This document shows, piece by piece, positions 4,401 to 7,400 of a stretch of DNA of 64,000 nucleotides (position 1 is the first letter of the stretch; each line of letters begins with the position of its first letter). The notes under the pieces were generated by a model. That model was given only the letters and a program-made list of their open reading frames with translations. It was not told the origin of the DNA and ran no database searches. A program made the position numbers and the translations under genes. Source of the DNA: Octopus sinensis (taxonomy: Eukaryota); assembly GCF_006345805.1 (NCBI RefSeq), contig NC_042998.1, positions 207,452,001-207,516,000 of the forward strand, given 5' to 3'.

Positions 4401-7400
4401 ATTATTATTATTATTATTATCGTTTGCGCGCCGGACGAAATGCTTAGCAATATTCCGTCTGTCGCTATACTCTGAGTTCAAGTTCCGCCGAGGTCGACTT
4501 TGCCTTTCACCCTACCGGGGTCGATAAATTAGGTACCAGTGAAAAACTGGAGTCAATATAATTGATTTGCCCCTTCCCTCGAAACTTCAGGCCTTGTGTC
4601 TTTAAGCAAAAAGGATCATCATCATCATCATCATCATCGTGGTTGACAGCGGAATCGATAGAGTGCCAAGTGCCTCGTGGTGTTTAGTTACAACTGATTA
4701 CTATTCAGTATTCAAACGCCGTTCATTACATCATAGATATATTCCTGCAGTCTGTTTCGCAATCAATAGCAAACATGAATGTTTAATTACCTTGATTCCC
4801 GTACCATCTGCTTCCACGTACACAACGCTCTCTCCATTGTACAGTTCACGCAGCAACTTAATTTGCGATTCTTCACTCGCATAATGAACATCTGCTTCGA
4901 AAGACAACGGAAAATAAAAAAAGACCACACGGCTGAAAGCGATGAATAATTACTTTTACGTGACATTATTAATAACGCCTTTAATAATATAAGATATAAA
5001 TAATCATTAAATTCTAAATTCATTGAAATTACATATGGAAAATTTATTATAATTTATGCGTTATTTTTTTTACTTGATTTAGTCATTAAGCCTCAGCCAT
5101 GCTGGAGCACCACTTTGAAGCGCTAAGTTCCAGGGACTTAAACACAACACAGGTTGTGAAGCGGTGATGGTGGGACACACACACAATATAGTATATACAC
5201 ACACACACACACAATATATAATGCACACACAATACACACACTATATTATACATACACACACACACACACACACACCGGGTATTTTCAGTTTCCGTCTACC
5301 AAATCCTCTTTGGTCGACTCGAGTCCATAATAAAAAGCACAAGCCTAAGGTGCCATGCAATAGGACTGAACTCGGAACCATATGGTTGGGAAGCAGGCTC
5401 TTTACCAAAGAGCCACGGACCAAAGGACCTTCTGGATATTATTGTTATTTATATTGTTTACACGTTGGAAAACCCATTGTACCGTCCGGTTTTTGTCTTG
5501 TGTGTTATGCCTTTTAATGTAATTTTGTGAGCCCTTGGTGGCGAGATGGCAGAACCGTTAGAAAACTACGCTGCATTTCGCCCGTCTTTACGTTCTGAGT
5601 TCAAATTCTTTCGGGGTCAAATTACGTACCAGTGAAACACTGGGGTTGATCGACTAGTCTCCCCCGTTCCCACCAATATCAGGCTTTGTGCCAGTCGTAG
5701 AAAGGATTGATTATTAAAATAAAGATGGCGAGCTGGAAGAAACGTTAGCACGCCGGGCTACGTTCTGAGTTCAAATTACGCCGAAGTCGACTTTACCTTT
5801 CATCCTTTCAGGGTCGATTAAATAAGCACCAGTTACGCACTGGGGTCGATGTAATCGACTTAATCCGTTTGTTTGTCCCCCCTGTTTGTAGCCCCTTGTG
5901 GGTAGTAAAGAAATAGGTATTTTGTCCGTCTTTACGTTCCGAGTTCAAATTCTGCCGAGGTCGACTTAATCTATCGTCCCGGAAAGGGTGAAAGATAGAG
6001 TACCAGTTGAATACTGAGGTCGATGTAATCGGCTTCTTCCCCACCAAATTTCAGGCTTTGTGCCTATTGTAGGAAGGGTTATTAATATTGTTGTTTAAGG
6101 TGGCTTCCTGGTCGAATCCCTGCCACAACAGACAAAACGCTTAACGCCGTTTCTTCTAGTGTACGTTTTCAGTTCAAAGGGCGGCGAGGTCGACTGTCAT
6201 TCCTCCTTTTGGAGTTTATAAGGAAAGTGTCCGTTAAACACGAGGGACAATATGATCCACTTATTCCTTACCTTAAAATTGGTTTTCTGGTAAATTCTTT
6301 TTTTCAACAAATTTTATTGAACAAAAACAATATCAACATGTAACAAAAACATCTTGATTATTCCGGGGTATATTCATCATCTACTTCAATTACTGTTTCC
6401 CATTTGCTTGGCAGACGGTCAGACTGTCATTTAAAGATGTTTTTGTTAGATATTGTTATTGTTGAGCAAAAAAAAAAGCTGCAATAATTATGCACCAACC
6501 GAATCTTTTTGACTAAAATCTTTGAAAACTTCTGTTTTATTTTTGTTTAAAGGTCGCCCCTTAAAAGAGAATATGCAGAGAATATGATCAGATTATCTAG
6601 CTTTGATGATGATGGCATCATCAAAGCTAGATAATCTGATCATAGGTCTGCTCTGAACAGATTTGGGGTTAAGCATCAACTCATTCGAAATATAATTCTT
6701 TTTATCTCCAGGTTGACCATCGTCATGGAGGAAGGAAATGCTACTTCATTTCCACTGGTATTTCTAATCAAAGAAACCGAATCAGAGAGTAAATAGACAC
6801 ATGGTGCCGGGTTGAGCCCCACTGCACCTCGAGAAAGTGTCTTTTGCTATAGCCTCGGACCGACCAAAGCCTTGAGAGTGGATTTTGTAGAAGGAAACTG
6901 AAAGTCCATCGTGTGTGCGTGTGTATGTGCGTGCGTGTGCATGTAGTACGCGTATGTGCGCGAGCGCGTATGTGTGCGCGTGTTTGCTCCCGCCCCACTC
7001 CGTTTGACAACCGGTATTGGTATGTTTACATCCCTATCACTTAGCGTTTCGGCAAAACAAAAAAAGTACAAAAGTTCTTCAAGGCGGTGCCCCAGTATGG
7101 TCGCTGTCTAATGACTGAAATGAAGAAAGAAAAGGCGTTGAAAGGATCTTACCTTCTTTGTAACCAGAAAACAAACATAAAACATCACAAATCTCTGCAT
7201 ATTCTCTTTTAAGGGGCGACCTTTAAACAAAAATAAAACAGGTAAAATTTTCGGTGAACATTTTCGAAAAATTTCGGCGTAAATTTTGGAAAAATTTTTC
7301 GGATAAATTTTTCGGATAAATTTTTCGGATAAAATTTTCGGATAAAATTTTCGGATAAAATTTTCGGATAAAATTTTCGGATAAAATTTTCGGGGAAAAT

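Follow-up and report, generated by a model that had tools for sequence, protein, structure and literature searches.

An octopus FAS-like ketosynthase gene with aspartate in place of the first catalytic histidine

A ketosynthase gene on the minus strand of the Octopus sinensis window

We analysed a 64,000-nucleotide stretch of the Octopus sinensis genome (RefSeq assembly GCF_006345805.1, contig NC_042998.1, positions 207,452,001 to 207,516,000 of the forward strand), hereafter the window, from whose first letter positions are counted. It holds the 5' third of a functional octopus gene, comprising at least nine exons on the minus strand which encode the ketosynthase (KS) domain of a protein resembling animal fatty acid synthase (FAS). 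Residues were numbered by alignment to the KS and malonyl/acetyltransferase (MAT) structures of human FASN (3HHD and 9B7Z; 264 bits). At the position of the EAHGTGT histidine, His293 of human FASN, codon 4808-4806 (minus strand) is GAT and encodes Asp. The active-site Cys is kept (TGT, 10434-10432; human Cys161), as are the Lys (AAA, 2860-2858; human Lys326) and the second catalytic His (CAC, 2845-2843; human His331), leaving the Cys-His-His and Lys set of an elongating KS incomplete by its first His only, both in the window and in Octopus bimaculoides. Direct reading of the letters confirmed what an initial annotation of this DNA had reported, namely the GAT codon, an intact Cys (in DTACSSS) and second His, and the neighbouring changes of T to I (exon X6) and of GD to ND (exon X7, VNDAMEI).

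The change of His to Asp is accompanied by at least six further substitutions at conserved sites. In exon X6, Thr297 is replaced by Ile (4796-4794), Pro264 by Ala (4880-4878) and Gly260 by Asp (4892-4890), the last in the window species only, as O. bimaculoides keeps Gly260. Gly300 is replaced by Asn in exon X7 (2938-2936), and the N-x-D-G loop reads L-F-S-G in exon X5b (Leu, 7174-7172; Ser, 7168-7166), corresponding to Asn252Leu and Asp254Ser. The window sequence breaks five of the 54 columns that are invariant in 23 animal FAS and FAS-like KS domains, as compared to 0-3 for the others, and all five (Gly260Asp, Pro264Ala, His293Asp, Thr297Ile and Gly300Asn) fall within 36 residues; at a conservation level of 90%, Asn252Leu and Asp254Ser join them. 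On its malonyl/phosphopantetheine side, the KS pocket is lined by the x-T-x-P loop and by the His and Thr residues of HGTGT, while the acyl chain is borne by the Cys, aided by the second His and the Lys. Given these residue roles, which come from established KS enzymology, the pattern reads as loss of the extender-unit half-site with retention of the acyl half-site.

Across approximately 836 KS motifs in the proteins gathered in this analysis, the HGTGT position is occupied by His in 822 (98%), and the 14 non-His cases include seven Gln and two Asp, making His to Asp rarer than chance would give. The two Asp cases are the octopus orthologue and P0074, a 263-aa bacterial-type polyketide synthase (PKS) fragment from a JGI metagenome, whilst the first His is present in all five nearest relatives of the window KS. 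An intron-free, transcript-like contig of 1218 nt (L003, Logan SRR26424594; protein P0391) encodes a FAS-like KS fragment that is 53% identical to window exons X6 to X8 and carries VELHGTGTPIGD, in which the His is kept and the Ala before it is replaced by Leu. Judging from the codon itself, A-to-I RNA editing could not turn GAT back to His.

The gene model was built by tblastn with the nearest database proteins (P0001 and P0003), which located eight exons of the minus-strand gene. Both tblastn and a region HMM built mostly on bacterial KSs missed the exon for the '..RVYA..N.DG.K' strand; when all open AG...GT stretches of suitable phase between X5 and X6 were enumerated, one good candidate emerged, X5b. 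Once X5b is added, the nine GT-AG exons (15494-1327) make up 1126 nt, or 375 codons, with zero stops. The initial annotation had counted ten exons in frame: the frame is intact, and the number verifiable in the window is nine. Pfam matches on a partial concatenate of the exons (PF00109, 112 bits; PF02801, 87 bits) identify a type I KS domain of the thiolase fold.

Exon X1 (15426..15494) begins the KS domain, matches the N-termini of relatives (KAYISGVSCRFPKSNNVQ) and is bounded by the acceptor ttctccag and a phase 0 donor, gtaagt; it has no Met, and the initiator exon must therefore lie further upstream. Exon X2 (13110..13253), placed by tblastn to P0001 and P0003 and by its splice sites, ends in FNSLEE and contains a clade-specific deletion of two residues (MF--GPTRW). 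Exon X3 (10609..10783) ends in SESNY at the same boundary as in the Pinctada gene (L001), exon X4 (10356..10514) carries DTACSSS at approximately 10443-10423, and exon X5 (8541..8688) ends at a phase 2 donor, AG/gtaagt. Exon X5b (7153..7220; 68 nt), between the acceptor ttttgtttaaag and the donor gtaaga, brings X5 and X6 back into one reading frame. It is identical to Pinctada exon 5 (KRIYASVVDIITGCDGFKE) at 9/19 residues from KREYA to YKE, and the Pinctada imbricata relative has an identical exon layout, with a separate exon of 27 codons at this place. An alternative match for the missing exon, 'KKRIY' at approximately 6298, was rejected for its donor phase misfit and poor acceptor. The intron just upstream of X5b contains a large tandem repeat with a period of approximately 24 nt (7111-7943), whose KIFPKNFS-like units are open in several frames; X5b (7220-7153) lies within its last ~110 nt, and the O. 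bimaculoides counterpart of the repeat region is an assembly gap.

Exon X6 (4791..4894), which holds EADGTGIK, had been annotated at 4791-4891: its identity as an exon of this gene stands, and its extent is revised to 4894-4791. It has the donor gtaatt and a NAGNAG acceptor at 4897-4892 (gaag/cag/), where use of the upstream AG gives a length matching the relatives (GYKE-E-GIVYPS) and use of the downstream AG would remove one residue. A longer in-frame acceptor at approximately 4931 was rejected as translated polypyrimidine tract. Exon X7 (2827..2941) starts with VNDAMEI and holds the Lys and second His, and exon X8 (1327..1470), ending in TEPTKLP, is the last KS exon within the window. The gene exits the window at its low end, with 1.3 kb remaining past X8; the O. 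bimaculoides exon that follows (GKIGINCFGFGGTIGH) is found ~4.3 kb past the X8 counterpart.

The orthologous locus of Octopus bimaculoides and selection on the domain

Database proteins were searched with a 272-aa query (hits of ~136-476 aa), an X-padded query (hits of 700-2440 aa) and a short 96-aa query. The short query returned a UniRef fragment of O. bimaculoides, whose 90% cluster contains XP_052821873.1, a protein of 568 aa annotated as 'fatty acid synthase'. Its locus (L002) is syntenic with the window, being collinear over ~20 kb; where non-coding DNA could be aligned (8.6 kb), the mismatch is 9.0%. The orthologous codon is also GAT (L002 18603-18605) and is flanked by synonymous differences (GTG/GTA and ACG/ACA). 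O. bimaculoides shares the changes of Pro to Ala, His to Asp, Thr to Ile and Gly to Asn with the window, and the Cys, Lys, second His and DTACSSS are kept in both species. A change of CAT to GAT needs one base, and the initial annotation had cautioned that a sequencing error or polymorphism could underlie it. The same GAT at the orthologous codon of another species, in an independent assembly and beside synonymous differences, together with the at least six accompanying substitutions at conserved sites, leaves an error, be it of sequencing or of assembly, or a polymorphism private to the window a negligible probability.

We counted synonymous and non-synonymous differences by the Nei-Gojobori method over the 282 codons common to both octopus sequences, which form a single species pair. 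There are 32 synonymous differences over 192 sites (dS 0.19) and 20 non-synonymous differences over 654 sites (dN 0.031), giving a dN/dS of 0.17 (binomial p = 2e-9 against neutrality). Set against the non-coding divergence of 0.090, dN amounts to one third of the neutral rate. The gene is under purifying selection, as had been proposed from the window alone.

These data bear on whether the gene could be an unprocessed pseudogene in early decay. The excess of changes at invariant sites would fit such decay, as would the short RefSeq model of O. bimaculoides, with its locus split in two models, and the lack of any transcript-derived fragment (136-476 aa) of the gene in the protein collection. 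Against it stand the nine exons themselves, with no stop or frameshift in 375 codons and canonical splice sites throughout, and the selection measured above. The oddities of XP_052821873.1 (a start that is an artefact, the absence of X5b and of half of X5, a long X6 acceptor and the split into two models) arise because runs of N in the O. bimaculoides assembly coincide exactly with X1, X5b and the ends of X2 and X5 (half of the latter exon). Homologous exons also continue downstream at L002 (10001-49546), through the end of the KS, a pseudo-acyltransferase, a WDHS linker and more exons to a second gene model (1022 aa) that carries a thioesterase (TE). We regard a pseudogene as very improbable.

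One of these downstream exons, whose counterpart falls outside the window, encodes the C-terminal KS motif GINCFGFGGTIGH (L002 25653-25712). In it, Ile (GGTIGH) takes the place of the GFGGxN Asn, which relatives keep as GG(V/T/S/A)N.H.

A molluscan FAS-like family without an acyltransferase nucleophile

The best PDB and database matches of the window KS are FAS or FAS-like. It is ~40% identical to true animal FAS, which are 55-62% identical among themselves, and 48-49% identical in the KS to its nearest relatives, proteins of 1844-1976 aa from Haliotis, Patella and Potamilus: the 'fatty acid synthase-like' proteins of Haliotis rubra and H. cracherodii (P0273 and P0275), P0274 of Patella vulgata and P0272 of Potamilus streckersoni. 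A fragment from Pinctada imbricata (P0001) is 44.5% identical in the KS. Two small deletions are common to the window sequence and its relatives, and a neighbour-joining tree groups the window with Haliotis, Patella, Potamilus and Pinctada in a clade apart from true FAS (100/100 bootstrap). By these relationships the gene is not a true FASN and is placed in a mollusc-only FAS-like clade. Exact look-ups of the window open reading frames (ORFs) and of P0392 gave no match, and a protein search with exon X5 alone returned only giant modular PKSs, in which summed domain scores outrank single-KS proteins.

Pfam finds KS, acyltransferase (AT) and TE domains in P0272-P0275, with ADH_zinc_N and PLAT in addition in the two Haliotis proteins, and gives no acyl carrier protein (ACP; PF00550), ketoreductase (KR) or dehydratase (DH) match in these four relatives. 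The octopus locus is comparable, with a KS, a pseudo-AT and a downstream model with a TE, and is intron-rich (nine exons per 375 codons). The family thus reads as KS, pseudo-AT, a middle part that is hard to recognise, and TE. In every aligned clade member, the AT motif GHSxGE has become G-[S/C/Y]-G-x-x-E and GxGxQ is gone; the AT nucleophile is therefore missing clade-wide. The variants read VGCGVAE, IGSGLSE, AGSGLGE and CGYGLAE (P0272-P0275 and L002 33867-34028), the octopus orthologue having CGYGLAE and VWLVFHDGLFMN at the GHSxG and GxGxQ positions. Immediately ahead of the lost Ser, the gastropod and bivalve members have Ser or Cys and octopus has Tyr, so that a shifted AT nucleophile is conceivable in the gastropods and bivalves. 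Since the octopus orthologue lacks active MAT motifs and is no true FASN, the database name 'fatty acid synthase' of XP_052821873.1 is misleading. Among the clade members examined, the KS His is lost only in octopus, and Cys-His-His is kept in all non-cephalopod members.

This clade is probably the one described as 'mo-clade 4' of the animal FAS-like PKSs (AFPKs) (PMC10764717), for which only KS, AT and TE are predictable, the genes are intron-rich and the biochemistry is unknown. Mo-clade 4 occurs in all mollusc classes, including cephalopods (Sepiella), and no other AFPK clade is listed for Haliotis or Pinctada (PMC10764717). Motif searches of the supplements of that study returned no octopus-like sequence. 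The sequence comparison places the octopus KS in a divergent, AT-dead mollusc family, rather than among FASN paralogues whose assembly line is normal in other respects.

Elsewhere in the window, no second KS gene was seen. Remnants of Mariner/Tc1-like transposases lie at 1640-2140 (minus strand), between X7 and X8 of the KS gene, and at 22614-23255 (minus strand; LLLQDNAPVHN). Reverse-transcriptase-like ORF fragments of the LINE (long interspersed nuclear element) type were found at 23942-24400 (minus), 30700-30991 (plus) and 42830-43645 (plus), and, with LINE-type fragments, many copies resembling SINEs (short interspersed nuclear elements) are scattered across the introns and the upstream 45 kb. 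Long imperfect microsatellites of the CATA/TGTA type (24500-25720, 32100-33600, 40900-41400 and 60500-61200) yield long spurious ORFs (HTYIHTYI.. or MYVCMYVC..).

Possible roles of the octopus ketosynthase and comparison with known systems

The HGTGT His is required for decarboxylative condensation, and its loss is the accepted signature of non-elongating KS domains, termed KS0 (PMC4661987), as the initial annotation had stated in suggesting that the enzyme may be a non-elongating, transacylating or partner-type KS. Because of this requirement, the reading we favour, with some reservation, is that the octopus KS has ceased to condense and is preserved for some other task, and by the same analogy the label 'non-elongating' appears reasonable. 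The octopus lineage would have rebuilt its pocket on the extender-unit (malonyl/phosphopantetheine) side by replacing His293, Thr297, Gly300, Pro264 and the N-x-D-G loop, while keeping the acyl-accepting Cys161, Lys326 and His331. With a carboxylate instead of the first His, decarboxylative Claisen condensation would be impossible, and the domain would work as a non-elongating KS whose Cys would most likely still bind or accept an acyl chain, as in KS0, and which would also serve as the dimerising scaffold of the protein.

Condensation might nevertheless persist if Asp acted as a general base or water-activating residue, or if the enzyme carried out a non-decarboxylative, thiolase-like condensation. 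Purifying selection on the domain and the kept second His, Lys and Cys would all be compatible with this. The near-universal His of the motif survey (822 of ~836), the loss of which is an accepted mark of non-elongating domains, argues the other way, as does the joint loss of three residues flanking the extender-unit site (Thr297, Gly300 and Pro264); from the established mechanism, a carboxylate beside the malonyl carboxylate or enolate should in addition repel. We therefore consider continued condensation improbable.

A stronger contender, though still a doubtful one, is a scaffold-only pseudoenzyme, in which the KS fold is selected only for dimerising and for organising other parts of the protein such as the C-terminal thioesterase, with no chemistry at the Cys and the change of His to Asp one symptom of a dead pocket. 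The clade-wide AT without nucleophilic Ser or GxGxQ, the missing Pfam matches to ACP, KR and DH, the joint loss of several invariant pocket residues and the Ile in place of the GFGGxN Asn in O. bimaculoides would all be expected of such a protein. A pocket without function would in turn be expected to lose its catalytic residues, yet both octopus species strictly preserve DTACSSS and the equivalents of Cys161, Lys326 and His331, and the clade members outside the cephalopods all have Cys-His-His.

That Cys, Lys and the second His are so strictly retained speaks for acyl chains still being bound or transferred. Within a domain that no longer condenses, however, a purely structural or otherwise re-purposed KS would be about as defensible as a transacylating one, because the AT of the family has no nucleophilic Ser and ACP, KR and DH are unrecognised. 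An octopod Cys-His-Asp site with a different chemistry, such as hydrolysing thioesters or passing acyl groups to an acceptor other than a carrier, appears unlikely; were it true, it would represent a newly evolved activity on a megasynthase scaffold, neither KS0 nor dead domain, within a pan-molluscan FAS-derived family already without AT and ACP function.

Several points weigh against a domain that has given up condensation and been kept for another role. The loss of condensation is argued by analogy with mutant and KS0 data, and Asp could in principle serve as a general base. Selection was measured on the whole KS in one species pair, and not on Asp as the selected state. A family with no recognisable AT nucleophile or ACP may offer no carrier-bound substrate for transfer. 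Some of the changes in the pocket are seen in one species only, since X5b and half of X5 lie in O. bimaculoides gaps, and the change of Gly260 to Asp is unshared between the two octopuses.

Animal FAS-like PKSs have been recognised only recently, and mo-clade 4 is the most widespread of their molluscan clades. We know of no product or chemistry for it. A member that is under selection without its condensation His, in a family without an AT nucleophile, suggests that the job of the protein is not chain elongation, at least in octopods. The natural Asp form, set against the His-bearing orthologues of Haliotis and Patella, would provide a concrete handle on the function of the family.

Human FASN offers the best match among solved structures (264 bits, ~41% identity), sharing DTACSSS, KSN.GH and the FAS-type N-terminus with the octopus KS. 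By comparison with FASN, the octopus protein has His293, Thr297, Gly300, Pro264, Asn252 and Asp254 replaced and has lost the AT Ser, and the GHSxG Ser and GxGxQ that mark an active MAT in FASN are absent from the octopus orthologue and its clade relatives alike; a true FASN has, besides an active MAT, a full KS-MAT-DH-ER-KR-ACP-TE set. The sacoglossan AFPKs EcPKS1 and EcPKS2 (mo-clade 1; PDB 9CQ1 and 9CTI) are, like the octopus protein, FAS-derived molluscan megasynthases, but match the window KS more weakly (178-181 bits versus 264 for FASN). They produce polypropionates, and have active GHSxGE ATs (PMC7280274).

The closest likeness is to mo-clade 4 (Lin, Li, Krug & Schmidt 2024, PMC10764717), whose probable members share KS identity of 44.5-49%, indels and the G-[S/C/Y]-G AT with octopus and, in the Pinctada gene, the exon layout. 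EAHGTGT.xGD, N-C-D-G and the G-I-x-x-P-S Pro are present in all the non-cephalopod mo-clade 4-like members examined, whereas octopus differs in each and has Ala for that Pro.

The KS0 domains of trans-AT and algal type I PKSs resemble the octopus KS in having the KS fold and a kept Cys with the HGTGT His replaced. They sit within multimodular assembly lines, with ACPs up- and downstream, whereas the octopus protein, FAS-like and from an animal, has a single N-terminal KS and neither a recognised ACP nor an active AT. Asp is also an unusual replacement when set against KS0, given that seven of the 14 non-His motifs carry Gln and two of the 14 Asp. By analogy, a KS0 would be expected to accept acyl chains and not to extend them, and the octopus domain would then be an animal example of an idea known from bacterial and algal assembly lines.

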